From sequence record KX397373.1: DNA of 64,000 bases. One strand, written 5' to 3'. The notes beneath the pieces were generated by a model. That model made no database searches, had not been told where the DNA came from, and saw only the letters and a list, made by a program, of their open reading frames with translations. Position 1 is the stretch's first letter. Each line of letters starts with the position of its first letter. Below, piece by piece: positions 7,426 through 31,205 of the stretch. A program made the position numbers and the translations under genes.

Positions 7426-7434
7426 GAGGCTACC

Positions 7435-8325
7435 ATGGGTATCAAATTGAATTGGGCGGATCAGTCTGCCCAGCAACTGACCGCGATTGAGATTTATCGC
7501 GGCAGTGCACCAATCTCCTCGGCAAACCCTGGAACGCCTCTTGTCGTGTTGGCGGGAACGGCAACGCAGTATGAGGATAACAACGTCAAAAACAAGACCC
7601 GCTACTACTACCGGGTGGCAGCGGTCAAAGGCAGCGAGCGGAGTTGGGGAAACAACCAGTTGGCTGGCTACTTCTCTGAAACGGGGCCAGGTCGTGCGAC
7701 ACCACTGCGTGGGTCGTGGGATGCTGGGTTAATGGACGTCGTAGCACCTGGCGACTTTATCACCTTGGCACAGTTACGTGCCCGCCTTCCTAAACTCGCT
7801 ATCGGTGGGGGAAATGAACCTACCCAGTGGTACAAGATGGTGAGTAAAGGCAAGGTGTTCTTTTTCCCCAATTCGAACATCGTCACTGCTAACTGGCAGA
7901 CGCTGTACGCGGCGGGACTGGTCTACGGGACGAACGATACCGGGACAATGCCAGCGGGTGCGAATCCAGGCGTCGCCCTCACGAATCAGTACACGACAGT
8001 GAACATTCGTGGTCTCGACTATATCGTCCGCTGTCCAAGTACCACCGATGCGCCACTAACGGAATTCGTTAATGCTCAAGAACCGACCGTGGGTTCTGAA
8101 TGGCGTAATACGTTGGCCCGACTTGTGCAGGACAAAGTCGACCCCTCGCCCGGCAAAGCATCGCGGTTAGGTGATGCCGATTCTCTGCCAAATATGTTTG
8201 GTGAACACTTCACCGCCAGCGGGTTTATCGGCTACCACGCGGGTGCAACGCCCGAAACGTACCGAGGCACGGTGACCAGCACGTCACAACCCTGTGCGTT
8301 GTTGTTCGAATTAATCATGCCTTAA
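7435..8325 (+). CDS. Module 2, type C virion protein
   Basis: GIKLNWADQ..LTAIEIYR; paralog of 4055 and 10864. Confidence 0.75.
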   Translation: MGIKLNWADQSAQQLTAIEIYRGSAPISSANPGTPLVVLAGTATQYEDNNVKNKTRYYYRVAAVKGSERSWGNNQLAGYFSETGPGRATPLRGSWDAGLMDVVAPGDFITLAQLRARLPKLAIGGGNEPTQWYKMVSKGKVFFFPNSNIVTANWQTLYAAGLVYGTNDTGTMPAGANPGVALTNQYTTVNIRGLDYIVRCPSTTDAPLTEFVNAQEPTVGSEWRNTLARLVQDKVDPSPGKASRLGDADSLPNMFGEHFTASGFIGYHAGATPETYRGTVTSTSQPCALLFELIMP

Positions 8326-12616: not shown

Positions 12617-13258
12617 ATGGAAAAGCTCAACTATAAGCTGTTAGAGAAGCCGTGGTTCGTTCTCACGGAAGATTTCCACTTCGCCTTTACCTTACGGTCG
12701 CTTTACCGTGAAGTCGGTGGGATGGATGAGATGGTGAAATTGTCAGGCGTGTTGCCCGACAAAGAACTGTTTGTGACTGCACCAAAAGGTTTCGTAACCG
12801 ACATGGCCAGTATCCCTGAACCGCTCCAGCCTATCCTGCATCCGGATGGGCCGTGGGCGGCGGCAGCCTGTGTCCATGACCTGTTCTACCAGAAATGTTC
12901 CAGTGTGGGGGTTTATCCAACCGGTGATGCGGGTGATCTCTCCCGTGCGGTGGATAAACGGTTCGCGGACATTATGTTCCTGCGGATTATGGAAGCGCTC
13001 GGGGTTGACCCGTTTATTCGCAAGTCATTCTACGAAGCGGTTCACCAGTTTGGTTGGCCGTCATACGTGGACAACAACGCGAAAGTGCAATACAGCCACC
13101 CGGTGGAGAAAACCCTGACGTATAATCGCAACTACCTGTTCATTCGTGAGCAGTGTGAAGTGGCGATTCCGGAACACGAGCGGGTAGACCTCACCACAGG
13201 ACATTCCGTCAATGTGAAGTATTTGAACATTAAACGGGCTTTCCTGAGCCTCGATTAA
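12617..13258 (+). CDS. DUF1353-family protein
   Basis: VPKGFVTD.ASIP-like motif (APKGFVTDMASIP) ...GPW..AACVHD.FY...AD..F...M...GV matches DUF1353. Confidence 0.8.
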   Translation: MEKLNYKLLEKPWFVLTEDFHFAFTLRSLYREVGGMDEMVKLSGVLPDKELFVTAPKGFVTDMASIPEPLQPILHPDGPWAAAACVHDLFYQKCSSVGVYPTGDAGDLSRAVDKRFADIMFLRIMEALGVDPFIRKSFYEAVHQFGWPSYVDNNAKVQYSHPVEKTLTYNRNYLFIREQCEVAIPEHERVDLTTGHSVNVKYLNIKRAFLSLD

Positions 13259-14025: not shown

Positions 14026-14550
14026 ATGGCAAAAACAGCACAAGCGCAATTTATTGCGATGTTCAACGCGGATAACACTGGTCTGGCGCAAGCACTGGTC
14101 GAAGCAGATGTTACCTTTGGCGCAGTGGCCGAATATGACCCTGCCGACGAGGCCGATACCCGCAACTCCAAAGTGACGCTGACTGCCGTTGCAGAAAGCA
14201 CGCACTTTACCGGGGAAAAGGAATTCCACTTCACCCGTCTGGCTGCAAGCATCGTTGGCGCGAAAGCAGTTACCGATGACCAGGCCGACTGGGACACCGA
14301 TGCCGAAGTCCTGGCATTCCTGAATGCTGACGTTATCACTGCCGGTAAAACGGACGATGCGTTTGCACTCAGCGAGCTGGACATTGTTCGTACCGATGGT
14401 GCGGATGATGCGAAAGTGATTACCGTCACTATCAAAGCCGGTCACCTGAAGTTCCTGCCAGGCGATGTGGCAGTCTACACCATTACGCAAGAGATCACTA
14501 AAACTGACCTCTCTACCACAAATGGTGAGCTCAACGGTTTCACAGCTTAA
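14026..14550 (+). CDS. Small acidic virion protein ending NGELNGF
   Basis: RNSKVTLTA...FTGEKEFHFTRL resembles the RNTR..L....F.G.KEFFYDRL domain. GAGGA RBS. Confidence 0.7.
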   Translation: MAKTAQAQFIAMFNADNTGLAQALVEADVTFGAVAEYDPADEADTRNSKVTLTAVAESTHFTGEKEFHFTRLAASIVGAKAVTDDQADWDTDAEVLAFLNADVITAGKTDDAFALSELDIVRTDGADDAKVITVTIKAGHLKFLPGDVAVYTITQEITKTDLSTTNGELNGFTA

Positions 14551-14632: not shown

Positions 14633-15139
14633 ATGGCTAAGTCGTTGCAAGAACTGTTTGTCGATATGATCAACGAAGTCAATCCAGATTTAGGGTTAAC
14701 GCTCAGTGACGTCACATTCGGTGCGCCTTCCGAATACACCCCTGCGGATTCAGGGGACACCCGCAATACCGTGTTGACTTTAGTGGCAAAAGATGACAGC
14801 CCGAATTTCAAGGGCAGTAAAGATTACCACTTCTTCCGCTTCAATTTCACTAACCCTGGTGGTGTCACTACCCCAACATTAACCACCGGGGATTTGATTG
14901 GGAACTGGCAGGACGATGCAAAGGTCTTGATGGTCATGAACATGATGCTGCCGAATTACAAACTGACAGCAGAAGAGATTGCCATCGAACGCGTGACCGT
15001 GGATGACACCACGTTAGATGTACGCATCACTATCGACCCCAACCATTTAAAGTGGCACGGGACATTTGTGACACGCGTAATCGACGAAGGAAAAACCAAC
15101 CTGCAATGGTTGAATCCCGAGTTGAGCGGGTTCAAATAA
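14633..15139 (+). CDS. Small virion protein, paralog of 14026
   Basis: DVTFGA..EY.PAD..DTRN..(V/L)TL.A shared with 14026; ends NPELSGFK. Confidence 0.7.
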   Translation: MAKSLQELFVDMINEVNPDLGLTLSDVTFGAPSEYTPADSGDTRNTVLTLVAKDDSPNFKGSKDYHFFRFNFTNPGGVTTPTLTTGDLIGNWQDDAKVLMVMNMMLPNYKLTAEEIAIERVTVDDTTLDVRITIDPNHLKWHGTFVTRVIDEGKTNLQWLNPELSGFK

Positions 15140-15189
15140 AAAGAAAGCGACCTACTACCCGTAAAGGTAGTAGGTCTGCTTATTTTATT
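15138..15189. terminator. Bidirectional terminator ending the minus-strand rSAM/fibre gene run
   Basis: GACCTACTACC / GGTAGTAGGTC stem with A-run to the left and T-run to the right. Confidence 0.85.
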
Positions 15190-15192
15190 CGC

Positions 15193-15861
15193 TTACAACA
15201 AGCCTTCTTCGGTCGCCACGGATTTGATACCCGTGAAGTCCTGTGCTTCGGCCAGTGTGCGAATCTTACGCTTGAGCTCCGTCATCGCTGCGTGCAGTTG
15301 CGCATCACGCTCAACAATAGCGGCCAGCACCGCTTTACACGCTGCAACGTCGAACGGGTGTTCTTCACTGCCTAAGCGGTTGTTCTGCGCATCCAGCCAA
15401 TACCCCGGCGAGGTATCGGATTGAACGTACGAGGCCAAGGACGCACGAGACTTCTCATCGGCTTGCAGCAGGATGCCCTGGAATTCGATGTTCTCGTGAC
15501 GCTGAGTTTCGTAGCGTTCCGCGATACGGGTATAGATAGGCTGAATCTCTTGGTAGAGATAGTTTACCGTCGAGGTCAAGCCTTTGCGGATTTCATCCAA
15601 CGGCAGCTCTAACACGGTTTCGATAAACTCTTTCGCCTTACGCAGCGTGAACTGGGCTTCCGGTTCACTGAGGTCGTACTCACGCAGCTTTTTGACGGCT
15701 GCTTTATCCGATACCCCGTTCAACAGATGATAATGCAGCAGGGTACAGTACCCCTGCTTGGTTTCATCGTCTTTCGCCAGAATGGTCATGTAATTACCGT
15801 GGCGGTCAATCGGGTTACCGAATTCGAAGTAACGGGCCTTTATCTCGTCATTACTAAGCAT
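15193..15861 (-). CDS. DUF4376-like tail-fibre assembly protein with a possible PqqD/RRE-like N-terminal domain
   Basis: C-terminal half FQG..LQADEKSR.SL...W.DA.N.......AI..R......H.....LK..I resembles DUF4376. AGGAG RBS. Confidence 0.65.
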   Translation of the reverse strand: MLSNDEIKARYFEFGNPIDRHGNYMTILAKDDETKQGYCTLLHYHLLNGVSDKAAVKKLREYDLSEPEAQFTLRKAKEFIETVLELPLDEIRKGLTSTVNYLYQEIQPIYTRIAERYETQRHENIEFQGILLQADEKSRASLASYVQSDTSPGYWLDAQNNRLGSEEHPFDVAACKAVLAAIVERDAQLHAAMTELKRKIRTLAEAQDFTGIKSVATEEGLL

Positions 15862-16430
15862 TCAGATTCTCCTGCTAACCCGAGGTCCATCAGCAGGCCG
15901 AAGTCAACCATCTGGAAGTGTTCGGATAATTCCTCACCCCAGATAAATTTCATCTTCTCTGCTAAGTCCCCGTTCTGTTCCTGGAAGATAAAGATTTGGT
16001 GCATTTCCTCACCAAACGAGTCGAACTGATGGTTAGAACGCAGCGCACGTACGCGCACACCGATCAAATCCGCAGCTTCCGGATTCTCCGGGTCGGCCCA
16101 GTTTAATGCCAGACCAATCAGGTTATCGGTATCCAGGTTCTGCGTAGAGCGACGCAGGATTTCGATTTTGTGGCGCGGGAATTCCGCAACACGCTGTTCG
16201 AAGCCCGGATTACGGATGGCCACCTGCTCCACAGAGTTGTGTGTTTTCTCAACCCCGTCCAGCGGCAGAATGACGTTCAGCCCGAAGCGCACACACAGAC
16301 GACGAATCTCATCAGTAAACGTGTCTGGTTCCACAATCGCGTGGATGTTGTACATGCCGTGCTTTTGCATAAACGCGGCAACAAGGTGAAGATTACGCTT
16401 CGTAAAATTGTGTATCAGCAACGACTTCAT
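15840..16430 (-). CDS. Hypothetical protein in the rSAM cluster
   Basis: 196 aa, AGGAG RBS, overlaps both neighbours. Confidence 0.7.
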   Translation of the reverse strand: MKSLLIHNFTKRNLHLVAAFMQKHGMYNIHAIVEPDTFTDEIRRLCVRFGLNVILPLDGVEKTHNSVEQVAIRNPGFEQRVAEFPRHKIEILRRSTQNLDTDNLIGLALNWADPENPEAADLIGVRVRALRSNHQFDSFGEEMHQIFIFQEQNGDLAEKMKFIWGEELSEHFQMVDFGLLMDLGLAGESECLVMTR

Positions 16431-17736
16431 TCGCTGGTGCTCCTAATTGGTTTTTCTTCTCGGCTGCTAATTTGCGATCGCGCACACAAGACACACAGTA
16501 GCACTGGGTCTTATCGTTCAGATCGGTATAACGGGTAGTACCGGTTTTCTGGTAGAAGTATTCTGCTACCAGCAGTTTGGCGGTAGTCCAGCCACACTGA
16601 CGACGCTCGGCGTGATACGCTTTGCGGTCTTCCATTTCCCCGTCACCGTTCTCGTATGACGCCGCGGCACAACTACCACACGCGTGCTTCATCGGGCAAC
16701 CCAGGCACGTTTCTGGGTAGTTGGTGTACTGCGTTTGAATTTCGTTCAACAGCTTATTGTCGTCGATATTGACAATCTCACGGCCACGCAGTTCTGCGAT
16801 AGCCTGACGTGTCGTTACCGTGGACATAAAGCGGTTACAGCCGTAAATCTTGCGGTCGAAGCCCAGGCAGGTCATGTGGGTTACGGTACCGCAGAACGGA
16901 CGCACACGCTCCGGGTTCAGACGCGTTGCTTCGTCGTCCAGGAGCTTCTGACGCCAATCCGGGTCCCAGGTTGCCATGAAGTCCAGGCCATCCGGGAAGA
17001 TGTGGGTCAGGCGGTTACGTGGGTCTTTCTCAAACCCTTTGTCGAACCAGTAGTCAATCACGTCCATCATCTGCAACGCAATCGACATTGCCATGGTGCG
17101 CGGCAGAATGTCTTCGTACGTGACGTTACCGGAAATGGTACCACCGCCAGTGACGTCCATCAGGTGCTTCATGGACTCGGCGTATTTCGGCAGGGTCTCA
17201 GACGTAAAGGTGGCTTTGATACCCAGTTCCAGGATACCGACCGATTTCAGGTAGTTGTAACCACGCATCGCTTTTTCGTACGACCCTTCACGGGTCGTGG
17301 TGAAGATACGATAGCGGTCGTGCACTTCCGGCAGACCATCGATAGACACACCGATGGACAGTTTGTCACGCCAGCGTTCGATAATCTCGCGGTTCAGCGG
17401 CTTGTCGAATAACGTGCCGTTCGTCGAGATGGAGAAGATAACATCACGGTTATCACGCTTCGCCAGTTCTTCGGCCGTTTCAAATACGGCTTTCAGAATC
17501 TTCGGCTGCATCATGGGTTCACCACCGATGATATCGATGATAACTTCCACGTTCTTCAAATGACGGTCACGGTCGAAACACGCATGAATGAAGTCCACTG
17601 CATCATCGGCTTTATTGTTACGCGGGTATTTACGCTCGTAGCAATATTCACAGTCGAGGTTACAGGAGAGGTTGGTCACCACCTGATAGGTTTTGGTGAT
17701 TTTGGGCTCTTGGGCCGGTGCTTTGGTATCACGCAT
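16393..17736 (-). CDS. Radical SAM/SPASM-domain peptide maturase
   Basis: CNLDCEYC (CX3CX2C); IIGGEP; SISTNGTL; SIDG. SPASM-like cysteines: CGTV..C..DRKIYGCNRF and CLGCPMKHACGSCAA...C. Confidence 0.92.
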   Translation of the reverse strand: MRDTKAPAQEPKITKTYQVVTNLSCNLDCEYCYERKYPRNNKADDAVDFIHACFDRDRHLKNVEVIIDIIGGEPMMQPKILKAVFETAEELAKRDNRDVIFSISTNGTLFDKPLNREIIERWRDKLSIGVSIDGLPEVHDRYRIFTTTREGSYEKAMRGYNYLKSVGILELGIKATFTSETLPKYAESMKHLMDVTGGGTISGNVTYEDILPRTMAMSIALQMMDVIDYWFDKGFEKDPRNRLTHIFPDGLDFMATWDPDWRQKLLDDEATRLNPERVRPFCGTVTHMTCLGFDRKIYGCNRFMSTVTTRQAIAELRGREIVNIDDNKLLNEIQTQYTNYPETCLGCPMKHACGSCAAASYENGDGEMEDRKAYHAERRQCGWTTAKLLVAEYFYQKTGTTRYTDLNDKTQCYCVSCVRDRKLAAEKKNQLGAPANEVVADTQFYEA

Positions 17737-18634
17737 TGCGATTTAACCCCGCTTGTATTACACGATTCATGTACTGGTAAGCGTCATAGCCAATGACTTC
17801 GGCCAGACGGTTACAGCCCGAGTTCAACACATCAATGGCATTGTCAGACTGGTCAAACGTGGCATCGGATTTTACCCACACCAGATTGCTACAGTCGTCA
17901 CAGTGCTGCTTGAAGAACTTGTTGATGCTGAGCGTTTGGTGGAACCCGTTCAGCGTGTTCAGCTCGGTCAACTGGTCGTGCATTTTGTTGTACCCGTACA
18001 TAAAGTTCATGACGAGATCCTGGTTAAGCGGCTTAGGCATGAAGTTATCAAACATCACACGGTAACCGTTTAAGCGGTAATGGTACAACGACTCGTGGAG
18101 TTTCAACAGGTCGTAGAACCAGTGCTTCGGTGCTAACTGGGCACGGGTAATCACCGACCATAACGTGATGTTGTCCAGCGCGTCAAACACCTCGAAAGCA
18201 TCGTAGCGACGCTCCTCAGCGATACGCAGCAACGGACGTTCGGATTCTGCATAGCCGTCAAAGGAGACGAAGATGCGATCCATTTGCTCGAGCACCGGCA
18301 GCTGGGCCGGGGTCAGTCGCAGACCGTTGGTGTACATTTCATGCTGTAGGTGCGGATAACGTTCCTTCAACTCAGCCATAAAGTCCTGGATTTTATTGAA
18401 CGCCAACAGGGGTTCACCGCCCGTCCAGTTAATTTGCTGAATAGTAGGATGCGCTTCCAGCGTTTCAAACAGCTTCTCTCTTTGGATGTCGCGCGCACTG
18501 TCCTTGACATCCATATACCCAACACCGCCACAGAAGCTACAATCGAGATTGCACTTCGAGGTGGTGACAATCGACAGCTCCATCGGAGTTGACGAAGGGT
18601 CGCGACGAATAGCCGACACAGCTTCTTCACTCAT
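17729..18634 (-). CDS. Second, shorter radical SAM protein
   Basis: CNLDCSFC; WTGGEPLL; YTNG; VSFDG. Only CDDC..C at the C-terminus. GGAG RBS. Confidence 0.88.
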   Translation of the reverse strand: MSEEAVSAIRRDPSSTPMELSIVTTSKCNLDCSFCGGVGYMDVKDSARDIQREKLFETLEAHPTIQQINWTGGEPLLAFNKIQDFMAELKERYPHLQHEMYTNGLRLTPAQLPVLEQMDRIFVSFDGYAESERPLLRIAEERRYDAFEVFDALDNITLWSVITRAQLAPKHWFYDLLKLHESLYHYRLNGYRVMFDNFMPKPLNQDLVMNFMYGYNKMHDQLTELNTLNGFHQTLSINKFFKQHCDDCSNLVWVKSDATFDQSDNAIDVLNSGCNRLAEVIGYDAYQYMNRVIQAGLNRNA

Positions 18635-18650
18635 TGCAGATTTACTCCAG

Positions 18651-19538
18651 TTATTCGAAAGTCAGCTTGAACAGCGGGTCATCTTTGATGTCCACACCCG
18701 TCTTTAACACGAACGGGTCGTTATAAGCATCAAGGATCTGGTTCAGAATAGCCTGACGGTCATTCACACGCCGTAAGTCATCTAACGTGACCGTGCGAGC
18801 ATGGAAGGCAGACACTGCGGTTTTCTCTTCAGCCGTCAGTTCTACTTTCGTCAGCAGGAACGCTACCAGTTTGTTCAGGTCTGCTTCGGTTGCAGGTGCT
18901 TCACCGAACTGCGTCTGCACCAGGTACTGCATCCACGGTTTGCGGATACGCTTGGTGATGTCGTGTTCGTCAAAGATTGCTTCGAATTGTTTCTCAGCCG
19001 GGTTCCAGACAAACTTGTAGCTGTAGGCCAGCAGGTCAAGCATGTTGGTAATGCCGTGCTTTTCAAAGCCAACGATAGGGTAATACTCTTCGACACCGGT
19101 ATACTGCTCAGTGTCTTGCGTTACCTGCGTAAACCAGCCAGGCATAGACCCCATGTAGTCCCAGCTCCATTCACGGCGGGCCATCGGTTTCAGGCCACTT
19201 TCGGTAAACGGAATCAGGAACATTTCCAGGTCAACCACCTGGTTCAATACCGCATCGCTCAGGAAGTATTTCCCATCCACTAAGCGACCTTTCACATCTT
19301 GCTCACCGGCCGTGATGTGAATGTGCTGCACGCTACGACCCGCTAACGTATAATCGGCTTCCACCGTATAGTTCTTCGGGTTAGCCAGCTCACGTCCACG
19401 AACCTTTGGCCACTCCCCTGGCAACTGACTGATCAGTCGCACCTGGTCTAACAGGTGGAATTTCACACTGTCGTACAGGCTGATATGCAGTGGGAAGTTT
19501 TGCGTTGTCTTAAACGCAAGGTGTAGATCGTTCTTCAT
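18651..19538 (-). CDS. Hypothetical protein between the precursors and the rSAM genes
   Basis: 295 aa, AGGGG RBS, short gaps to neighbours. Confidence 0.75.
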   Translation of the reverse strand: MKNDLHLAFKTTQNFPLHISLYDSVKFHLLDQVRLISQLPGEWPKVRGRELANPKNYTVEADYTLAGRSVQHIHITAGEQDVKGRLVDGKYFLSDAVLNQVVDLEMFLIPFTESGLKPMARREWSWDYMGSMPGWFTQVTQDTEQYTGVEEYYPIVGFEKHGITNMLDLLAYSYKFVWNPAEKQFEAIFDEHDITKRIRKPWMQYLVQTQFGEAPATEADLNKLVAFLLTKVELTAEEKTAVSAFHARTVTLDDLRRVNDRQAILNQILDAYNDPFVLKTGVDIKDDPLFKLTFE

Positions 19539-19548
19539 TTAAGTCCCC

Positions 19549-19755
19549 TTATCGGTTCCCCGCTCCGTGACTACAACCACCGCTACATGTCCAGCTACAA
19601 GACCCGCCGCAGTTATAGTGCGATAACGGTAACCCAGCAAGGTTGTTAGTCGTACTAACCGTCCCCTGGGTTGCGATGAACGAGTTAGCGTCCGCCGTCT
19701 TGATATAGCCTTCCACTTGCACCATTTTGTCACGGATGTTTTTGAGTGAAATCAC
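19549..19755 (-). CDS. Short Cys-rich precursor-like peptide P3 (4 Cys)
   Basis: GTG start after GGGGG RBS. ISLKNIRDKM leader and HYNCGGSCSWTCSGGC core are homologous to P1 and P2. Confidence 0.8.
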   Translation of the reverse strand: MISLKNIRDKMVQVEGYIKTADANSFIATQGTVSTTNNLAGLPLSHYNCGGSCSWTCSGGCSHGAGNR

Positions 19756-19799
19756 ACTAACCCCCAAATTTGTAAAAAGTTAACTGGGAGACGAGGGCG

Positions 19800-20198
19800 T
19801 TACCGCGTTGGCCCGGAACAACCGGAACAACCAGAGCAGCTTGAGGAACATGAAGAAGAACAACCTGTTGAACACGTTCCTGAACAGCCGTTTGCACAGC
19901 CTCCTGAACATGCACCCGAACAGCCCGTACAGGTCGAAGAACAACCCGAAGTACAGCTGGACGAACAACTTGCCCCACACGTTCCCGACGCAGAACCTGA
20001 GCACCCGCCGGAACACGACGAACATGTCCAGCTACAGGTACCGCCACAATCATAATGCGCACGCGGCTGGCCGCCAAACAACGTCGAGTTGTTCGTGGCT
20101 TTATTGCGAATATAGGTCTGCACCCCTGCCGCGTTTTTCAATGCGGTATTATCAATACTATTCAGACGGTTCTGAATATCTTTTAGGTTGATAGCCAT
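19800..20198 (-). CDS. CX2-3-repeat precursor-like peptide P2 (132 aa, 20 Cys)
   Basis: AGGAG RBS, ATG 20198. MAINLKDIQNRL leader; HYDCGGTCSWTC then a Ser/Gly/Thr-Cys repeat. Confidence 0.88.
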   Translation of the reverse strand: MAINLKDIQNRLNSIDNTALKNAAGVQTYIRNKATNNSTLFGGQPRAHYDCGGTCSWTCSSCSGGCSGSASGTCGASCSSSCTSGCSSTCTGCSGACSGGCANGCSGTCSTGCSSSCSSSCSGCSGCSGPTR

Positions 20199-20209
20199 GA
20201 TGTCTCCTA

Positions 20210-20593
20210 CTACGGCCCAGAGCAGCCAGAACAGCCCGTACAGCTCGATGAGCACGACCCCGAGCACCCGCTACATTTACCGGAGCACCCGCCGGAGCAA
20301 CTGCCTGAACAACCTGAGCAACCCGAACACCCGGTAGAACAACCACCCGTACAGCTGCCGGTACACGTCGACGTACACGTTCCCGAACAACTGGTACAAC
20401 TTGCCGAACACCCGTTAGAGCACGACCAGCTACACGTACCACCACAATCTAATTGACCCGGTGTCCAACCCGCAAAGCGCTCTTGCGCGTTATACGCTTG
20501 CGAGGCAACTTGCGCATCAACGCGAGGTCCGGTGGCGACATTGGCTTCCACTATTTGCAGGCGGTCGCGTATGTTTTTAAGTGAGATTGCCAT
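20210..20593 (-). CDS. CX2-3-repeat precursor-like peptide P1 (127 aa, 21 Cys)
   Basis: AAGGA RBS. MAISLKNIRDRL leader; DCGGTCSWSC then a Ser/Gly/Thr-Cys repeat. Confidence 0.88.
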   Translation of the reverse strand: MAISLKNIRDRLQIVEANVATGPRVDAQVASQAYNAQERFAGWTPGQLDCGGTCSWSCSNGCSASCTSCSGTCTSTCTGSCTGGCSTGCSGCSGCSGSCSGGCSGKCSGCSGSCSSSCTGCSGCSGP

Positions 20594-20610
20594 ACGTTTC
20601 CTTTAAGAAT

Positions 20611-20644
20611 AAAAAAGAGGACACTGCCATAAAGACAGGTCCTC
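20611..20644 (-). terminator. Terminator-like hairpin between the fibre gene and the first precursor
   Basis: Minus strand GAGGAC-CTG...CAG-T-GTCCTC followed by TTTTTT. Confidence 0.55.
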
Positions 20645-20659
20645 GTGTTTTTAAAAAGT

Positions 20660-21859
20660 TTAGCGTGTACCAGCTTCTGCTTGTACGTCGTCGCGAGTCG
20701 TGAGACTGTTGTTGACGTGAACCGCAGCTTGCACCACACCACCGTACGTCTTGTGGAGGTAGTTCGGGTGTGGGTTGTCCGCTGCAACGTGGTTCGCCAG
20801 GTTCTGGTTTGCCTGCGAGATAGCGTTGGTATTGTTCGTGATGCGGGTGTTCTGCGCGGTAATCTGGGCTTGCAGGTTATCAATCTTCTGTTGGAAGTCT
20901 TGACCTTGCGATTCCAAATCACCGACACGCTGCGTTAACGCGTTCAGGGCAGACTGCAAATCATTGACAGCTTTCTGCAACTGCAACACCAGGGAGTTGA
21001 GGTTCGCCAAGGCGAGCGACATCTTCTGGTAGTTCTGCGCCACGGTGTTCAGCTGGTCATTCCATGCCACCAGAGATTGCACCACTGCATCGATACGGGC
21101 TCCCAGTGCAGTATCGGCGGTTTTCAGTGAAGCAATTTCTTTTAAGGTGTCATCAATCTGCGTTTGAACCGCGGCAATCAGTGCACGAATCTCGGTTTCT
21201 GTCAGACCGTTGATCTGGTGAATATTGAGACTGTGGACGTTGCCTTGTGCATTAACGTGCGCATTCAACGCATCAAGGAAGTCTTGTTTCAGACCGTCGA
21301 TGATACCTTTGATTTGTTCGAGCTGTACCGCCGACCCGGAGTTAATCGCGTCTTTGATGCCCGACAGTACCGTGATGATAAACTCGAACCCGTAGATGTC
21401 ACCCACGTCTTTAAACGTAGGTGCTGACGGGAACGTATCCGGAACGTTACGCAAGTCTTTGAAATCAACCGTGCGGTCTTCCAGTTTCAGCTCTGCAATC
21501 GCCTGAGTAATGGCAACAACGTTTGCTGACTGTGGACCACCGATGACCTGAGCCGAGATAGTGATGTCGGTTGGAATAGCAGAGTTGGTGACCACCACCC
21601 CCATCAGGATTTCTTGGTTCTTGGTAAGCTTCTCGTACGCCGGGTGAGCGAAGATCAGCTCATAGTCCGTCCCACGTTTATAGAAGGTACCGGGTTTGTT
21701 CGTTGCAGCCAGACGAAACGACTCCGCGTAAAACGGCCCGTCTGGGAATGCAAAGGCCCGGTTAACCTTACCGGAACCTAACGTAACGCGTCGTGTGACT
21801 GCGTTCGACGTCAGTGTCCCCTTTAGGTCAAACGGGTACTGATATACAATAGCGGCCAT
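20660..21859 (-). CDS. Tail fibre/baseplate-associated protein with a long C-terminal coiled coil
   Basis: AAGGAG RBS, ATG 21859. YPFD..G N-terminus, GPFY, G.DY.L, DLRNVPDTFP, heptad region, H....NPH motif. Confidence 0.75.
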   Translation of the reverse strand: MAAIVYQYPFDLKGTLTSNAVTRRVTLGSGKVNRAFAFPDGPFYAESFRLAATNKPGTFYKRGTDYELIFAHPAYEKLTKNQEILMGVVVTNSAIPTDITISAQVIGGPQSANVVAITQAIAELKLEDRTVDFKDLRNVPDTFPSAPTFKDVGDIYGFEFIITVLSGIKDAINSGSAVQLEQIKGIIDGLKQDFLDALNAHVNAQGNVHSLNIHQINGLTETEIRALIAAVQTQIDDTLKEIASLKTADTALGARIDAVVQSLVAWNDQLNTVAQNYQKMSLALANLNSLVLQLQKAVNDLQSALNALTQRVGDLESQGQDFQQKIDNLQAQITAQNTRITNNTNAISQANQNLANHVAADNPHPNYLHKTYGGVVQAAVHVNNSLTTRDDVQAEAGTR

Positions 21860-21902
21860 AGCCAAACTCCTTTGATTGGGGCGTCCGTGCCCCACAGCGC
21901 TG

Positions 21903-24900
21903 TTAAGACTTGAACATAAGATTGACCTGAATCTCGTCCAAGTCAACCAGCGAGTTACCTCCAGCGTATTCACAGGCCACTGTCAGAGTCAGCGTTCCGG
22001 AATTGTAACTGGCAACAAACGGAGGGTTCAGCGCATCTTTCCCGGTGTTCAGTACCACCGCCGGTTCAGAAGGCAGATTCGGGATGACCAGCTCACGCGC
22101 TACCCGCACCACACCAAAGCTCGATGTCAAATCGCTCAATGCATACAGCATGAACGGGGTATCAACATCGGTCTGTCGGAAGACGGTGCCGGTACTGTCG
22201 TCCACCACCTGTATCGCCAACATCTTCGTCTTCAGTGTTTGATACTGAGCCGCGGTCAGTTGCGCAGACAAAGTGGCCACAAACTCCACCCCAGCCGGAA
22301 GTCCTGAGCCGGTGACATTCACGAGGTCAGGACCCGTTGCAAACGGTATCTCCGCAGCGGACGGATTCACCCCGGACGTCAGGCAATACCAGAACATCGG
22401 GATACCGTTCGGTACCGCGTAACGCAGGCTAATCTGGCGAGCCGGATCACCAATATTCCCCGGCACCGTAAAACGCAACCTGGCCACCGCCATGTAGGTT
22501 TCCCCGGCGACGTGCGGCACAGACTCAGCACCGATCCACTTCATGTTAAAACTGGCCGCGCGGGCATTGTCTGCCGTTACGGCGGCCGTCTCAACCGGAG
22601 GTTTCAACCAGAAGCGCTCAGAGACATTCACCAGGTCTTGCCACCGCGTGGCACCAAACCCGCTATAGCGTTTCTGGATAGGGAGCGCAGGACGAGTTTG
22701 TCGTGTAATCCCTTTGGACAGCTCTTGTCCATCGGCATACCCGGCAGTGCCCGAGCCCGGTGTCGCTAACGGCACTTTGCTCAGTTGCGCCATTGACCCG
22801 ATACGGGCTTCACGGGCAGCGGACACATCGTGACGGTTAGCGACCGCAGCGTGCTCTACCAACTGCTTGACGTTACCGAAACGTTTCACCTTATCAAACG
22901 TCGACAGGGTAATGCGTTCGCTGTCCGTCACAACCGTACCGATATACAGCTGGGTATCGCTGTCCGGTTCCTGTTGCTCCAGCAGGCGGTATTGCGGAAC
23001 CCCGTTGACCAGCGCAGCGTGCATGTAGAACGTGCGGTTCTGGTAGTTAGTTGGGTACAAGTCACGGATATCGGAACTGTATTCGCCCAACGTGTAGTAC
23101 GCTGAACCGAATCGCAGCAACTCCTGTTCCGTGATGTACAGCGCCCAACCTTCCGCAGTCTTCGTCCCGGCGAGGATGTTATCCTCAGGTGTCCCGGTAC
23201 GGAAATTGCGGACGGTGTTCTTGTAGACACTGGCGGCAAAGTACAACCCATTAAACAACCATTTGGTCATCCCGATATAACCGGTCTCTGGCATCACCAC
23301 AATGTCGACTTCATTCGAAGACGGGTTCATGGAAATGAGCGAGTTCGTCCAGCCCCCGAAAGTCGTATCACACGACAACAGGAAAGAACGCCAGCGACTG
23401 TCTCCAACCACCCCCATTCGGTACAACGCCCCCAGGAACAACACATAGCCGTCGTCACGCTGAATCAACTTCGAGTTGGTGTACTGGTCGTGTGCCAAAG
23501 AGATACCGGCATCCGGGTCGCGGTAGTTCTCGACCACCGGTGACAACATCGTGGTACCCAACTGCACGTTCCCGTTGGTCACCGACATCGGCAGTTTCCA
23601 CACCCAGGTAAAGGTGTGGGTTACCAGCCGACTGGTGTTGTCCCACATGCGCACAGACGCCATGGCGAATGCCGCATTTAACCCACCGACATCGAACACT
23701 TGCAGCTTGGTTAATGTTTGCACGACCAACTCGTCGTTCCACACCGGCACCGCTGCTGCAATCGCCGCATTCAATGCTGCCCAGGTCGCATCCGATACCG
23801 TGATACGATCTGCGGTAAAGGTGGACGTCCCGGTCACGGTCTTGTACGGGAAAGACCCTGCCTCGGTAATAACACGACCGTTGATGTACAGTTGGCCATC
23901 TTTCCAGATATTCGGCGAAGACAGCAAGGTTCGGTAGTCAGGGTCGGTCACCGCGATACGCGCATTGTCTGGCCCCCAGCCCGGATAGTCCGGGAAGTAG
24001 CGAGACGATTGGGTATAACGGAGCTGGATAACCTCTGCGGCCACATTGAGGTGTCGCATCAATACCGTGTTGGCAGTCCCACCGAGGTGGATAAGGCCAC
24101 GCATGTATTGCTGGTACACCGACCCTACTGCACCACCCACGGTGGCGTTTGCGGTTTCGATAAGCGTTGTGCTGCTACCGAGTAAATCGTACAAACTCGT
24201 GTTCGGTGCTGGACTGATACCGATACGTGGCGGGTTGTTTGAATAAACGTCACAGAAGGAGTTCATCAACAACCCTGAGGACAGGAAGACCCTGTTCGTC
24301 AGCGCCACACCTTTGTTACGGTTGGTCACCGAGGGCAGAGGCTGGGCATTTGGGAACTCAATCTTGTTCTCGGTTAATGCGATCGGGAAGATTTTGTTCT
24401 CAAGCGTCAATAACCAGTTCTCCGTGTTAAGGGAGAGTGATACCGACCAGGCATCTGTCCACTGTGCCGAGGTATTATCGGAGAAGTACCCGTGCATCTC
24501 TGCACGCAACCGCACCATGTTCACCTGTGAGGCTGAATAAAACGAAGGGAGGTAGTTAACCGCATTCCCGTTCGGCCAACGGGCTTTCCCCTCCGCGGTA
24601 CGGTAGGCCAGGAACTTGGTTGTGGCATCGTCGCCATAACCGCCTTCTTGTACAATCAGCGCCACGTCGCCGTCTTTGTCTGGGTAATTGAAATTAATTA
24701 CCGGGATAGTCGAACTGTTTTTACTGCGCAGTTCGCTCAGACTGATACTCCAACCGCCAACAGTAAAGCGGGTGTTGTTGACAATAGACATCAACACAAC
24801 CACACGACCTTTGGTCACCGTCACTGTCGAATACTGACGATAATCTTTAAAGGCGAGGGTACTGCCGTTCGACCGGACACAGTCGGGCAGAGTGATCTGG

Positions 24901-26933
24901 TACACGTCGTTGTGGGTCGCGTAGTTCATCGTCCCGTTGAACAACACCAGATAGAACAACCCGTCGCTCGCCTCAAAGATACCGGCATCAGAATCCCCCA
25001 CCACTACACGCGTCAATACCACACCAGGGAATTTACTCATCCCAGCTGGATGGTACGGGAACGTCGTGGGGTAGTTCTTCAGGAAATTATTAGACCCCCC
25101 GATAGACGCATACCAGTAATAGACCCGGCGGGTGTCTTCTGGCCCATCGCTGCCGTTACGCAGCACATAGACGTTACCGCCTTCGTAACGGGCAACCGCC
25201 CAGTTATTGGAACGATCGTAACCAAAGCCCGCGTAGTTACTGACGGTAGGAATAGGCAGGAAACTCGGGTTACCGTATTCCGCGCCCCCGACTGTCCAGG
25301 ATGGCAGTAAAGTGTTCACCTTCTCATTCAGCGACTTGATAGACTGGTCGATAGCGTACCCCTGTTTCGAGGTCACCATCTTATCATCGGTCGAGTCAAT
25401 CGCATCCCACAGTTTCACCAGACCACTGACAGACGTTGACCCGTACGGGACGTTGTCCAAATCAGCGAGGGTATGCGTGTGGTCTGTTTTTGCCTTACTC
25501 GCCAATGCCGCAGTTAGTGCTTTAGTAACCGGCTTCTCTAACGGGGCAGTGTTGTCCATTTTGTCGATACCGAAATCGGTTTTCGTCAAGGTCAACACTT
25601 GTTTCCCATCAGACCCTTTCACAAACTTCTTGCCGTTGATGCTGTAAGTGTCATCAACGTACAAGTCCAGTTTGTTTTTCAGGTCATTCACCGCCTTCTG
25701 CGAAATAGCAGCACCGGTGGCTACTGAGTTCGAGATATTGGTGATAGAGAACAGACCCGCTACCGCCGTCGTTGCGGTAGGCAGTTCCACGTTCATGTAC
25801 ACCCGGTTGGTGTCTTTCCCGCTACCGTAAATCTTGAGTGTGTCGCTCGATTTAAAGTAGGCGTTCGCCGGTAACAGTTTCACCGAGGTCAGATACATCC
25901 CGACCATCTCCGGCGTCACCAGATACACAGAGTTAAACACCGGGGCCAAGACATCGGCTGCTGCACCGGAGTGTACCCAGAGGGTATTCAGACCCGCAGA
26001 GAACTCTACCCCGATACCAGGGTCGTTGTTGTCCTGGTCAGCTTTCAAGACCAGCGGTTTCGGCGAGGTAATAATGAACTTCTCGCCCTTCATGCTGATC
26101 AGGTGACCTGCGGTGGTCTGGAAAGTAATCGCGTCGTTGTTCAGAACACGCAGACGTCCCAGTAAATCCCCCAGGGTGTTGTCCATCAACAGGTCAACGT
26201 GCGCCTGTGAGATGCCCGAGGTGGACATCAACGTCACCAGCTCTGCCAAGGTACGGCCGAAGGCTTTCGTCGCGTCTACGGCCTTCCCAACGACCGGGAG
26301 CGCCCCTACGTCAGCGGTGGTGTAACCGTGGGCATTACTTTTCAGGTGGTGCTGGTACATCTCCTGCTCGAACACGGTGTTACCGTTCTGGTAAATCATG
26401 TCGGTCAGTTCAGTAAAGGCACCGTCCAGCTCACTGGCACGCTCGAGGATACCCAGACGAATATCTTCCAGCGCTTTCACCACTTCATCACGCAGAATCG
26501 CCTCATCCAGATTCTCTGGTGGGTCGATAGGTGAGATAACCGGGGCATACTTCATTAACTCTGACCAATCCACGTTACGCGGATCAGGCAAGTCGGTTTT
26601 CACCAGGTACTTACCAATCTCTGACTGAGGCAGGCGATATTGACGCCCCACGGCCAGGAACTCGTAATCCACTTCGGAGGCAGTCAGTAGGATGAAGCCC
26701 CCGTAGATTTGGTCTTGCTCAGCTTCGGCCAGCTCTTTGAAATAGTAACCGAGATAGTAATCCAGACCCTCAATCAGGGTGCGTTTACCGCCGGGTGCTA
26801 TTGCATCCTTAACGGTGAGTTTCAGACCAATGCGGTAGAAAGGCCCTTCGGCAGGAATCACCGCATTGTATTTGTTCGGGTACGTTGCGGTCTTAAGCGT
26901 ACCGTTAAACTGCGCCGCATCTTCTCTCGGCAT
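21903..26933 (-). CDS. Large tail fibre protein (about 1676 aa)
   Basis: AGGAG RBS, ATG 26933. Fibre-repeat motifs ATTAVAGL, STSVSGLVKL, HTHTLADL, GIDKMDNT..LEKPV. Confidence 0.8.
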   Translation of the reverse strand: MPREDAAQFNGTLKTATYPNKYNAVIPAEGPFYRIGLKLTVKDAIAPGGKRTLIEGLDYYLGYYFKELAEAEQDQIYGGFILLTASEVDYEFLAVGRQYRLPQSEIGKYLVKTDLPDPRNVDWSELMKYAPVISPIDPPENLDEAILRDEVVKALEDIRLGILERASELDGAFTELTDMIYQNGNTVFEQEMYQHHLKSNAHGYTTADVGALPVVGKAVDATKAFGRTLAELVTLMSTSGISQAHVDLLMDNTLGDLLGRLRVLNNDAITFQTTAGHLISMKGEKFIITSPKPLVLKADQDNNDPGIGVEFSAGLNTLWVHSGAAADVLAPVFNSVYLVTPEMVGMYLTSVKLLPANAYFKSSDTLKIYGSGKDTNRVYMNVELPTATTAVAGLFSITNISNSVATGAAISQKAVNDLKNKLDLYVDDTYSINGKKFVKGSDGKQVLTLTKTDFGIDKMDNTAPLEKPVTKALTAALASKAKTDHTHTLADLDNVPYGSTSVSGLVKLWDAIDSTDDKMVTSKQGYAIDQSIKSLNEKVNTLLPSWTVGGAEYGNPSFLPIPTVSNYAGFGYDRSNNWAVARYEGGNVYVLRNGSDGPEDTRRVYYWYASIGGSNNFLKNYPTTFPYHPAGMSKFPGVVLTRVVVGDSDAGIFEASDGLFYLVLFNGTMNYATHNDVYQITLPDCVRSNGSTLAFKDYRQYSTVTVTKGRVVVLMSIVNNTRFTVGGWSISLSELRSKNSSTIPVINFNYPDKDGDVALIVQEGGYGDDATTKFLAYRTAEGKARWPNGNAVNYLPSFYSASQVNMVRLRAEMHGYFSDNTSAQWTDAWSVSLSLNTENWLLTLENKIFPIALTENKIEFPNAQPLPSVTNRNKGVALTNRVFLSSGLLMNSFCDVYSNNPPRIGISPAPNTSLYDLLGSSTTLIETANATVGGAVGSVYQQYMRGLIHLGGTANTVLMRHLNVAAEVIQLRYTQSSRYFPDYPGWGPDNARIAVTDPDYRTLLSSPNIWKDGQLYINGRVITEAGSFPYKTVTGTSTFTADRITVSDATWAALNAAIAAAVPVWNDELVVQTLTKLQVFDVGGLNAAFAMASVRMWDNTSRLVTHTFTWVWKLPMSVTNGNVQLGTTMLSPVVENYRDPDAGISLAHDQYTNSKLIQRDDGYVLFLGALYRMGVVGDSRWRSFLLSCDTTFGGWTNSLISMNPSSNEVDIVVMPETGYIGMTKWLFNGLYFAASVYKNTVRNFRTGTPEDNILAGTKTAEGWALYITEQELLRFGSAYYTLGEYSSDIRDLYPTNYQNRTFYMHAALVNGVPQYRLLEQQEPDSDTQLYIGTVVTDSERITLSTFDKVKRFGNVKQLVEHAAVANRHDVSAAREARIGSMAQLSKVPLATPGSGTAGYADGQELSKGITRQTRPALPIQKRYSGFGATRWQDLVNVSERFWLKPPVETAAVTADNARAASFNMKWIGAESVPHVAGETYMAVARLRFTVPGNIGDPARQISLRYAVPNGIPMFWYCLTSGVNPSAAEIPFATGPDLVNVTGSGLPAGVEFVATLSAQLTAAQYQTLKTKMLAIQVVDDSTGTVFRQTDVDTPFMLYALSDLTSSFGVVRVARELVIPNLPSEPAVVLNTGKDALNPPFVASYNSGTLTLTVACEYAGGNSLVDLDEIQVNLMFKS

Positions 26934-26952
26934 TGCAAAGACTCCTACTTTG

Positions 26953-26989
26953 AAATAAAACGGATACCCCACCCCGGAGGGTGGGGTTA
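26953..26989 (-). terminator. Terminator-like hairpin between fibre genes
   Basis: ACCCCACCC / GGGTGGGGT stem with a T-rich tail on the minus strand. Confidence 0.6.
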
Positions 26990-27023
26990 CCTACGGACGC
27001 AAAACGTCCGCAGACGTTCCGTC

Positions 27024-30000
27024 CTAAGAGGACCACTCACCTAATGCGTTACCTGCCGCAGTCTGCTCACGCTTCAGCTCAGACAACACCCACAGCCAGG
27101 CTGTAGAAGTGAGATGGAAGGGGTTACGCTTCTCAGCCACGTACTGCGGGCTGGCGCTACGTAACTCCCACGCAGAGTCCGGCGTCAGTGTGGTGATGGT
27201 CGCCCCACTGCTGTCCAACACGTTTAAACTGAACGACAAGTTCAAAGACTCACCATTCACAGTGTCCGCAGGTTTAAACCACAGGTACACTGCTTGCCCG
27301 GCACAGATAACCGTTGCATCAACGGCCGCCGACGGCGAACCTGACTGCGCGGCCCAACTACGACCACTGCCCCCATCCACGATACGCGACCCCAAGATAA
27401 TCCCACCGGCCATAACTGGCCCAGTGATATTCCCAGTAATCTTCGCAATCGCTTTCGCGGTTGCTTTATCAGGACGCCAACACAACATCACCGGTTCGCG
27501 GAACCGCATCGGGGTTTTACCAGCTGCCGTCGCTTTCGCCACTGTCCAGTTAACCGGAAGTTTCCCTGCCGGGTACAGTAATGAACCGCGCTCGGCCCGT
27601 GAGGCATGGAACGGTAACCCCAGTTGTCCACGGTGTGAGATTTCGGCATTGCCTTGCCCACACGGCACGGACACCCATTCAGTCAATTCCCAGTTCACCG
27701 GTTCCCCATACGTTGTCGGGTCAACGACCTTTAACACATACTCGGAATCACGAGTGTTGTCTGTACGCCGTTCGATATTGGTATCGACGTAGGCTTCAAA
27801 CAAGGGGCGCAGGAACTGGTATTTGTCCAAATCGATTGCAGGGACGTTCGGGTTCATTAAGGCATGGCCCACACGCAAACGTTCACTAGGGGCAAGACCA
27901 TTGAACAGCACACCCACACCGTCACCCAGGAAGTACGAGAGTAAATCAAACGGCAGTTTAATCTCGACTTGTTGTTCACGCACCCCAGTAAAGCCAGGCT
28001 GACCACACAGGACAGACATACGCAAAATACCGGTAGTGACGTTATAACGGTAACGTACTGCCCAACGTGGGGAATACGTGCCGGTGAACGGCGCATTGGT
28101 TCCCAGGTCGACGTAGTCCAGGCAATCACCGGTTGCAATGGTGGTATCGGAAAGTTTGGTCACGGTAATTCCGCGCGTCACTTCCGTCAAGCCAATAACT
28201 GGGATGTTGCCACTGTTACGTACGTCATTCGCTTCTTGCGTCGTACGACTCAAATACCCGTAATGGCACTTGAAGTCTTTCAACGAAATGCGCAACACCT
28301 TACTGCTGCCCGGCATGGCGTTCTTCGCCGCAATCAGCACCAGGTACGGTTCTTCGGCATGAGCAACCGCTGCTGCCGTGTTCGCCACGTCAATGGTCAG
28401 CGTCCCTTCAAACGTCGGAGCGTTATTCTCTTTCGGGTTGAATGGGGTGAACCAACACATCGGGTGGTTACCGAGGGTTTCGAACCAGGCCAAAATATCC
28501 GATGAACCGTTACCGGTGTGGTACCAGTCAATCATTCCGCGGGTACCGAAGTACATATTGCTGAACGTGTTGTTGGAGTTGTTCTTCGTGATAGCATGGT
28601 TGTACGGTTCCGGCTGCACTTTACCCAACATCTTAAACCTCGGGTTATCACTGAACGCCCAGTCACTGGCTTTGGAGCCGTGGGCTTTGCGTATCGCGAT
28701 ATGATCGGAGATTTCATCCGACGGCCCGAAGTCGAAGGTAGTATTAAAGGTAAGTGTGCTGGCGGCACCCGGACTGTTAGGCAAGTCAACGTACCCGATG
28801 AGACCGCGCTCGATATCCAAGTCTTGCGAGAGGATAGGTTCGGCACGGGAATACAACGAGGTGGTCAACATGTTCACGTACAGGTAATGACGCAGCCCGC
28901 CCGGTTTGGTCACAAACTCTTGCAGGTGCTCCAGACGTGTCTCTGTCCCGGACGTATACAACGGATAGATGTCATCGTAGATGTCGAACTGCAAGGCAGC
29001 GGCTTTCGCAGGGTCGTTACACTCTGCTTTAATCGCGATGCAGTGCTCCTCAACACCCAACGGTGGTTCAGCCACGACATACAGCGGTGAGTTCCCCGTC
29101 GCAACTTGTTCCCCGTTCAGGTACACGGTGATTTTACCGCCACCGGCGATGTACATCTTAAAGGCACCGGTTGCTGATTTCAAACGCATCTTGGCGAGCA
29201 CAGACACCACGGACAGATTCCCCATCCCGGTAGCCGACTTACCGATTTGCTTCCCTTGAATGGCGATTGGTGGTTGTTCCGTCATCCCGGTAAAGGTCAA
29301 CCCCGCGCCGGTATTGATAACCCCGGTACCCCAGGTGTCTTCCATCTGGTTATCCGGAGAGAACCAGTTGAACATCGGCGTCGTCTGCAAATCAATCGAC
29401 CCGGATACCACACCCTCTTTGCGTGTCCCGTCTTGCAGATAGAAATATTTCAAATCTGTGACAGACATGCGGTAGGTGTTGAGTGTCCAGGTAGACGCAT
29501 TCACCGCGGTGAAGTCTGTGACGGTACCAGACTTCGCATTGGCAAGGGCGGCTGCCACCACCGCTAAGCGGTCAGACAACGCTTTCAACACCGACGGAGT
29601 CACGCCACGACCCGCAGCCAATCCAGCTTGGTTCTTGGAATAACGCCCAATCCCCTGGAGCTGTTGTGAGGCTTCGTAGATGTTCAGTTCCGACCAGTCA
29701 TGGTGGTGCCCGGTCGGGCTGAGGTCTGTAAGCGCTTCACTGAGGTCATCAGACAGCGGTTTGTCGGCATCGGGGATGTTGTTCGCATTCCCCAGTCCCA
29801 GGTCGGTCTTGGTCAGCGTACGACTACCATCGTCCATTGCTTTGTTGTTCAGCAAAGTCGATTTCAGCACGTACCCGCCCATGTCCGCTTCGTATCCCGT
29901 CAGTGAGTCAGGCGTTGCCGCCACTCCCGAGGTTTCTGTCCCTGGCCCTTTCTTCAGTTTGACCACACCTTTAACAGTAGTGGTCGCGTTCTGCGGCGTG

Positions 30001-31193: not shown

Positions 31194-31205
31194 TCAGAGT
31201 TCTCC

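Follow-up and report, generated by a model that had tools for sequence, protein, structure and literature searches.

Cysteine-repeat proteins encoded with radical SAM enzymes in the tail-fibre cluster of an Erwinia jumbo phage: candidates for an enzymatically cross-linked fibre component

The Erwinia jumbo phage vB_EamM_Stratton (KX397373.1, 244 kb, genus Erskinevirus) encodes, within the 64,000-nucleotide stretch analyzed here and referred to as the window, three small paralogous Cys-repeat proteins, P1, P2 and P3. Their genes lead an operon that also carries two radical S-adenosylmethionine (radical SAM) enzymes, and this cassette sits in a tail-fibre/baseplate gene cluster with assembly chaperone-like genes. 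As radical SAM enzymes stand beside P1-P3 in the fibre cluster, and a homologous module is fused to fibre proteins in unrelated phages, it is probable that phages use these enzymes to cross-link a portion of a fibre, in much the way in which bacteria make modified peptide antibiotics. The reading that we favour, with a little more confidence than doubt, is that P1-P3 are small structural proteins of fibre type (tail-fibre or peripheral-baseplate), whose Cys-repeat rod is cross-linked by the radical SAM enzymes, thioethers being the probable bonds, and that they are not precursors of diffusible peptides. Coordinates are those of the window, equal to the KX397373.1 coordinate minus 124000, and window positions 18000-23000 are 100% identical to the record.

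Three paralogous cysteine-repeat proteins

P1: 20210-20593, minus strand; Stratton gp185, 127 amino acids (aa), of which 49 form the N-terminal segment and 78 the Cys-repeat region; 21 Cys, from residue 50 on
P2: 19800-20198, minus strand; gp184 read from an ATG start, 132 aa; 20 Cys, from residue 51 on
P3: 19549-19755, minus strand; gp183, GTG start, 68 aa; 4 Cys, from residue 49 on; N-terminal segment and junction as in P1 and P2
Junction motif of P1: 20417-20449, minus strand; DCGGTCSWSCS
Junction motif of P2: 20019-20051, minus strand; DCGGTCSWTCS
Junction motif of P3: 19582-19614, minus strand; NCGGSCSWTCS

The original prediction had placed three paralogous open reading frames (ORFs) at 19549-20593, and these are confirmed, on the minus strand. 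Its leaders, its junction, its C-termini of CSGCSGP type and the in-register position of P2 at which Ala replaces Cys (CSGSASGTC) are exactly as it had them, and a recount returned the same Cys numbers (21, 20 and 4) and the same occurrence of Ser or Thr directly after Cys, which holds for 20 of the 21 Cys of P1 and for 17 of the 20 of P2. All three genes are labelled 'hypothetical protein' in the Stratton record, and P1 matches phrog_6085 (1.3e-48). The GenBank start of gp184, a GTG at 20267 that overlaps P1, is probably wrong, the ATG at 20198, with AGGAGA ahead of it, being the better candidate.

The three proteins share a common layout, in which the first Cys always falls at residue 49-51, the consensus (D/N)CGG(S/T)CSW(S/T)CS forms the junction and Cys follows Cys in the cores at a spacing of 4 or 3 residues. 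Cys accounts for 27% of the core, the remainder being mainly Ser, Gly and Thr, with almost no Asp or Glu and no more than a single Lys or Arg. This composition and the short Cys spacings resemble those of metallothioneins and other metal-thiolate proteins, and P1-P3 could accordingly be unmodified structural or metal-binding proteins, metallothionein-like or stapled by disulfides or metal after lysis, while the neighbouring radical SAM enzymes act on something else. Metal binding by short repeats at a fibre tip has precedents, for instance in the T4 long tail fibre, at whose tip His-x-His motifs hold iron. However, no Pfam metallothionein family matched P1-P3 at E <= 0.1, and P1-P3 differ from metallothioneins in having Trp, a strictly periodic CX3 pattern, a conserved N-terminal domain and obligatory radical SAM neighbours. 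Metal binding alone also does not explain the conserved, family-specific residue that follows Cys. We regard this alternative as very improbable, also in view of the enzyme partners described below.

Reading frame and conservation

The DNA of the P1-P3 region is of low complexity and leaves several other frames open as well. Comparison with the orthologs of phage ChrisDB identifies the Cys frame as the selected one through the pile-up of substitutions at third positions: codon positions 1, 2 and 3 of the P1 core differ 6, 4 and 38 times, respectively. Synonymous against non-synonymous codon changes amount to 34:5 in the core and 18:11 in the N-terminus for P1, and to 41:8 and 22:11, respectively, for P2. 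The Cys-rich reading frame is thus real, far beyond chance, and purifying selection is stronger on the core than on the N-terminal segment. A recent DNA tandem array was considered as the origin of the repeat periodicity and discarded, as only three 9-bp arrays with 2-3 copies each are present.

The P1 N-terminus was found by tblastn in 59 phage records, all of them SPN3US-like jumbo phages of Erwinia, Salmonella, Escherichia and Proteus, and the whole cassette is syntenic across these relatives. All three paralogs are present in each of the 15 related jumbo phage genomes examined, where P1 invariably has 21 Cys; P2 has 20, with the Ala site, in nine of them, 21 in three and 23 in three, and P3 has 4, 3 or 2. 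The variable core length originally proposed is hence seen between the paralogs P1, P2 and P3 but not between orthologs, as the constant Cys number of P1 makes clear. Likewise, an alignment of homologs did not bear out the suggested contrast of a conserved leader with a variable core, conservation being higher in the core than in the N-terminus. Constraint on the core and a constant unit number indicate a structure with a defined length rather than a bioactive peptide that diversifies.

Concerning individual positions, the C, G, C and S of the junction are invariant across 45 sequences, and W nearly so (C-x-G-x-C-S-W). The P3 of Derbicus- and Wellington-type phages ends in ...CNGSCSWSSS..., the repeats being lost and the junction kept. 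Within the repeats, the residue after Cys is the sole conserved non-Cys position of the unit, with Ser or Thr in about 81% of the 597 units of the Stratton-type family. A Gly (G42), about 8 residues before the start of the core, is invariant.

These features admit a second alternative, namely a true RiPP (ribosomally synthesised, post-translationally modified peptide), in which 48-residue leaders guide the radical SAM enzymes and are then cut off, after which lysis would free the cross-linked Cys-rich peptides to act as antimicrobials, in signalling or against defence systems. Small proteins with a conserved N-terminus and an invariant junction, followed by a repetitive core, are what such a system would look like; cleavage might take place after G42, and release by lysis would make an exporter unnecessary. 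P2 moreover weakly matches the NCBIfam CXXX-repeat target models, below cut-off in both cases (TIGR04114, 18.5 versus 20 bits; TIGR04117, 16.8 versus 50 bits); P1 and P3 match neither. On the other hand, RiPP cores usually diversify, while here the core is the more conserved part and the Cys count is fixed. Considered together with the gene context discussed in the following sections, a RiPP appears unlikely to us.

The slot of P3 is not uniform. In some SPN3US-like contigs it holds a protein of 210 aa (P0110, L105 6001-6633) or 147 aa (P0121, L106/L107 6001-6444) in which the N-terminus and 4-Cys junction of P3 precede an additional C-terminal domain, beta-rich as judged from the sequence. 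These added domains comprise 80-140 residues and are reminiscent of exchangeable fibre tips; their presence counts against a RiPP. P3 had been proposed as a minimal primer or cap, a role that is not obvious for a third, universally retained paralog whose slot sometimes acquires a further domain.

It should be noted that annotation of these genes is uneven. The records of SPN3US, phiEaH2, Caitlin and Proteus phage 7 lack an annotation of P1-P3 (loci L002, L003, L008, L009, L006 and L011 cover relatives, at ~7000-8050), and opposite-strand ORFs are called in their place in Phobos, Huxley, ChrisDB and Kwan.

Radical SAM enzymes and partners in the operon

P1, P2 and P3 are followed by gp182, gp181, gp180, gp179 and gp178, in this order:

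gp182: 18651-19538, minus strand; 295 aa, no Cys, phrog_8030
gp181: 17729-18634, minus strand; small radical SAM enzyme, 301 aa, PF04055 (7.9e-14), CxxxCxxC at 28/32/35
gp180: 16393-17736, minus strand; large SPASM-type radical SAM enzyme, 447 aa, PF04055, CxxxCxxC at 25/29/32
gp179: 15840-16430, minus strand; 196 aa, predicted partial TIM barrel (AF2 pLDDT 85) without the Cys triad
gp178: 15193-15861, minus strand; DUF4376 protein, 222 aa, PF14301 (3.2e-9), last gene of the operon
Hairpin closing the operon: 15149-15176, terminator-like on both strands; perfect 12-bp stem between the convergent gp178 and gp177

Beyond the radical SAM motif, gp181 has three further invariant Cys in its C-terminal part, while gp180 has eight further conserved auxiliary Cys in a SPASM-like layout and a CxCxxC close to the C-terminus, all of its Cys being invariant in seven orthologs. 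The best NCBIfam match of gp180 is PapB (NF047865, 1e-38, 133.4 bits versus a cut-off of 340), and TIGR04115, the radical SAM peptide maturase of the CXXX-repeat target family, aligns over positions 5-345 of 359 with 121.2 bits versus a cut-off of 350; both alignments span the whole of gp180. The closest solved structure is that of CteB, the SCIFF thioether maturase (5WGG, 8.8e-14). The original prediction had inferred processive modification from the peptides without mentioning any enzyme, and the presence of two radical SAM genes in the same operon, one of them of SPASM type and nearest to thioether-forming maturases, supports this logic.

PapB, which makes freyrasin, and CteB are SPASM enzymes that form thioethers from Cys to side-chain carbons, PapB acting repeatedly on Cys-x3-Asp units. 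A maturase nearest to those of ranthipeptides and SCIFF peptides, directly adjacent to its putative substrates, is what the RiPP alternative would predict. There are, however, clear differences. The cores of P1-P3 are almost devoid of Asp and Glu, the candidate acceptors being Ser and Thr, the substrate is apparently structural, and about 20 sites per chain lie far above known ranthipeptides. The first ~100 residues of CteB form an N-terminal peptide-recognition domain, the RiPP recognition element (RRE). The gp180-CteB alignment begins at CteB residue 103 and gp180 residue 21, and gp180 hence has no counterpart of that N-terminal extension. No RRE was matched anywhere in the cassette by Pfam or NCBIfam, nor was a peptidase family found in gp178-gp182 by Pfam, NCBIfam or phrog; an exporter was likewise not recognised in the cassette. 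The lack of a detectable peptidase counts against a RiPP, as may that of an RRE, a role that gp182 could fill.

The bacterial CXXX-repeat system (TIGR04114, TIGR04117, TIGR04115), whose families were reportedly defined in a 2011 paper, is similar in that tandem Cys-x-x-x units are encoded beside a SPASM-type radical SAM enzyme; its chemistry is, to our knowledge, also uncharacterised. All Stratton scores fall under the curated cut-offs of these families, and the Stratton cassette differs from that system in being phage-borne, located in a tail-fibre cluster and equipped with a second radical SAM enzyme, a gp182-type partner and the CxGxCSW junction. A search with the gp180 profile in 185,579 genomes of bacteria and archaea did not reveal any cellular organism as a close source of the cassette. 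The matches were distant and N-terminal, with 24-31% identity, in the candidate phyla radiation (CPR), Omnitrophota and an unclassified metagenome-assembled genome (MAG).

Regarding the remaining partners, the AF2 model of gp182 (pLDDT 84) had no structural relative in the PDB or BFVD except its own ortholog. The model of gp179 gave weak Foldseek matches that include the radical SAM enzymes SkfB, TigE, DesII and Cfr (E 2.5e-3 to 1.3e-2), and gp179 may on this structural prediction be a degenerate radical SAM fold; no support was found for a flavodoxin-like reductant.

Two side observations concern the small radical SAM enzyme. In SPN3US (L002 8962-9876) the annotated start is an internal ATG, and the resulting 264-aa protein lacks the CxxxCxxC. 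The same holds for Proteus phage 7 (L008); the intact 304-aa ORF starts at L002 8962, as annotated in phage EC001. Also, two IMG/VR jumbo contigs have a second small radical SAM gene (303 aa) between P1 and P2 (L026 3542-4453 and L034 3543-4454) and keep the canonical downstream copy.

Related modules in tail-fibre loci of other phages

The distribution outside the jumbo phages provides the link to tail fibres. A word-index search with the P1 N-terminus gave no candidate, and an exhaustive search of 1.84 billion proteins with a profile of the N-terminus plus junction later gave 28 matches. Distant relatives of gp180 were found to adjoin Cys-repeat ORFs that are not short peptides.

In a siphovirus-like contig (L099), a repeat fibre of 258 aa comes after a GpJ-like tail-tip gene. 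It ends ...NASKLAGQTSGYYRCSGCSWTCTTNC... / ...NASKLAGQTSGYYRCSGCSWTCTTNCTGRC..., and its junction agrees with the Stratton-type N-terminus profile (hhalign 95%, E 2.9e-8) as well as with phrog_6085. After this fibre come a gp182 homolog (hhalign 97%) and three radical SAM genes, the last one 36% identical to gp180. The junction-profile search also recovered P0132 (211 aa) and P0133 (226 aa), both matching phrog_6085, in which the module makes up the C-terminal half. P0133 lies directly after a Phage-tail_3 (GpJ-like) gene, with a radical SAM gene next (L102), and P0132 is followed by a small radical SAM gene, a gp182-like protein (hhalign 93%) and a radical SAM enzyme 35% identical to gp180 (L103). 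In a protein of 654 aa, P0131, nine tandem repeats match positions 5-34 of the profile (E 3.2e-6), and from its sequence it can be read as fibre-like.

A further case is an element related to phage P2 (L036), with the gene order Baseplate_J, Tail_P2_I, a 384-aa tail fibre, a 250-aa protein, a radical SAM/SPASM enzyme that shares 32% identity with gp180 (residues 15-394), another radical SAM enzyme, a DUF1353/phrog_1158 chaperone and the tail sheath. The fibre combines a PF12571 N-terminal domain (1.8e-40) and fibre repeats with a Cys-repeat C-terminus (CNGCSGSCSGSC... / CNGCSGSCSGSCSSGCTACSGCSGSCSG...). Two suggested similarities were discarded: the 250-aa protein of this element and a 257-aa protein of L101 reach just 25% and 33% in hhalign as gp182 homologs, and the likeness seen by eye between the P1-P3 N-terminus and the regions that precede the cores in L036 and L037 is without statistical support.

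Other repeat styles occur beside related enzymes. L042 (2976-7001) encodes a protein of >1300 aa that combines Laminin_G_3 and CBM_4_9 domains with an unbroken C-terminal run of 44 C(Q/E)xx units, and a radical SAM gene comes directly after it. Here Q or E follows Cys in 42 of 43 units, and the identity of the post-Cys residue therefore differs by family. L037 has two ORFs with CxC-type repeats and 31-35 Cys, L039/L041 and an Omnitrophota MAG (L014) show still further styles near related radical SAM genes, and in L040 a distance of about 1.3 kb separates a Cys-repeat ORF from the radical SAM gene.

Altogether, radical SAM genes accompany Cys-repeat ORFs in at least 8 unrelated non-jumbo cassettes (L014, L036, L037, L039/L041, L042, L099, L102 and L103), in keeping with the processive modification originally proposed. 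Partners that are this obligatory, together with the jumbo lineage that gained an extra small radical SAM enzyme between P1 and P2, argue against unmodified metal- or disulfide-bearing proteins. Taken together, the junction, the Cys repeats, the gp182-like protein and the small and large radical SAM enzymes constitute a portable module of tail-fibre loci. Since the module forms the C-terminus of larger fibre proteins, the 'leader' cannot be removable there; its removal from the L036 tail fibre and the fibre-like tail-locus proteins would detach the repeat, which speaks against a RiPP.

Tail-fibre surroundings in the window

gp186: 20660-21859, minus strand; 399-aa coiled-coil virion structural protein, phrog_2163, directly upstream of P1
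gp187, gp188 and gp189: 21903-34916, minus strand; virion proteins of 1689, 1389 and 1236 aa
gp176 and gp177: 14026-14550 and 14633-15139, plus strand; DUF7941 proteins
gp174: 12617-13258, plus strand; DUF1353/phrog_1158 tail assembly chaperone, of the family that also follows the radical SAM genes in L036

The same N-terminal domain (phrog_2163) is common to gp186, gp187, gp188 and gp189, which look like a paralogous family of fibre-like virion proteins with differing distal parts. DUF7941 is a chimallivirus family recently proposed, in a preprint on phage Goslar, to form peripheral-baseplate filaments (10.64898/2026.04.21.720040). That the cassette is embedded in such a fibre cluster is a further point against a RiPP.

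A 66-nt spacer (20594-20659) separates gp186 from P1 and contains a short hairpin (20624-20638) followed by a T-run TGTCCTCTTTTTTATT, and P1-P3 may for this reason be transcribed apart from the upstream fibre genes. In a promoter and terminator scan, the hairpin at the end of the operon alone exceeded the shuffled expectation.

Proposed mechanism

The favoured reading, that of small fibre-type proteins with an enzymatically cross-linked rod, suggests the following sequence of events. The domain order of P1 and P2 is an N-terminal segment, the invariant C-x-G-x-C-S-W junction and a region of C-(S/T)-G-x repeats. The N-terminal ~48 residues appear to resemble one fibre-shaft unit, and their probable job would be oligomerisation and enzyme recognition. 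Late in infection, in the cytoplasm, the co-transcribed gp182, gp181, gp180 and perhaps gp179 would act on the Cys repeats, before or during assembly, with gp182 as a putative substrate-binding or scaffold partner. By analogy with PapB and CteB, the nearest characterised enzymes, the likeliest chemistry would be one thioether per Cys, made to the Ser or Thr that follows the previous Cys, yielding contiguous (S/T)-x-x-C rings. The choice of acceptor is suggested by the post-Cys residue, the only conserved non-Cys position of the unit and one whose identity is family-specific. Asn-x-x-Cys beta-thioethers formed by a radical SAM enzyme have reportedly been described, which we treat as a lead only. 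As a result, about 80 residues would become a covalently laddered, rigid and protease-resistant rod of fixed length; the multiply ringed rigid rod envisaged in the original prediction is a reasonable product. The junction, kept where the repeats are lost, may be a separate site of modification or recognition, which would fit the presence of two enzymes.

Several observations weigh against this proposal. No baseplate-attachment domain is recognisable in P1-P3, and a hidden Markov model of their N-terminus matched no other ORF in the window or in about 70 loci, for which reason a shared baseplate adaptor could not be shown. The presence of P1-P3 in the virion is presumed: no proteomic or structural record was found that places them there, and being unannotated in SPN3US and other records, they may have been omitted from published searches. 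The chemistry of the cross-link is entirely inferred, the bit scores of gp180 fall far short of the curated PapB and TIGR04115 cut-offs, and the Pfam SPASM family gave no match to it. The link to L036 consists of the enzyme and the repeat composition, not of the junction (hhalign 21%), and the conserved Gly ahead of the core could be a leader cleavage site.

A more far-reaching version of the proposal, which we consider possible but rather doubtful, is that tail-fibre maturases of radical SAM type form a class that has so far gone unrecognised and that extends over siphoviruses, P2-like myoviruses and jumbo phages. P1, P2 and P3 of Stratton- and SPN3US-type phages would then co-assemble in register as a peripheral-baseplate mini-fibre, their ~80-residue tails being laddered into a rod by about 40 enzyme-installed thioethers. 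On this version, a virion structural protein would for the first time be seen to undergo post-translational modification by a radical enzyme. Co-assembly in register is proposed because the first Cys falls at nearly the same residue in all three proteins and because all three are kept in every genome examined.

Comparison with known fibres and virion cross-links

Known phage fibres fold with chaperones or bind metals, and the present system has several traits in common with T4 gp37 needles (His-x-His iron sites) and with fibres of P2 gpH type and their chaperones, i.e. fibre-cluster genes, the PF12571 family at the fibre of L036 that bears the Cys-repeat C-terminus, and adjacent DUF1353 and DUF4376 genes. 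P1-P3 are much shorter than usual phage fibres, and none of the fibres known to us has radical SAM enzymes of its own or ends in Cys repeats. Covalent cross-links that stabilise part of a virion have a precedent in the HK97 capsid chainmail. In HK97 they are autocatalytic isopeptides of the capsid, whereas those of P1-P3 would come from separate Fe-S radical enzymes and would be located on part of a fibre.

Significance

The genes described here were already public. What would be new is the proposed recruitment of radical SAM-modified Cys-repeat peptides as a structural module of phage fibres; in the searchable literature we found no description of the module, nor of any connection between tail fibres and radical SAM enzymes. 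The chance is considerable that the module stands for a new kind of virion maturation. If the favoured reading holds, it would join RiPP-type radical SAM chemistry and phage virion assembly, hitherto separate fields. It would likewise provide a concrete biological role for the orphan CXXX-repeat radical SAM families, as well as a compact, genetically encoded route to rigid peptide rods of fixed length and probably great stability.

In practical terms, P1-P3 belong in the search sets of proteomic and cryo-EM studies of these phages. For the phages themselves, the proposal would explain why P1-P3 are conserved in model and biocontrol phages such as SPN3US and the Erwinia jumbo phages, despite several unannotated records, and it would mean that the apparatus by which a phage contacts its host is built in part by enzymatic radical cross-linking, beyond folding, chaperones and autocatalysis.

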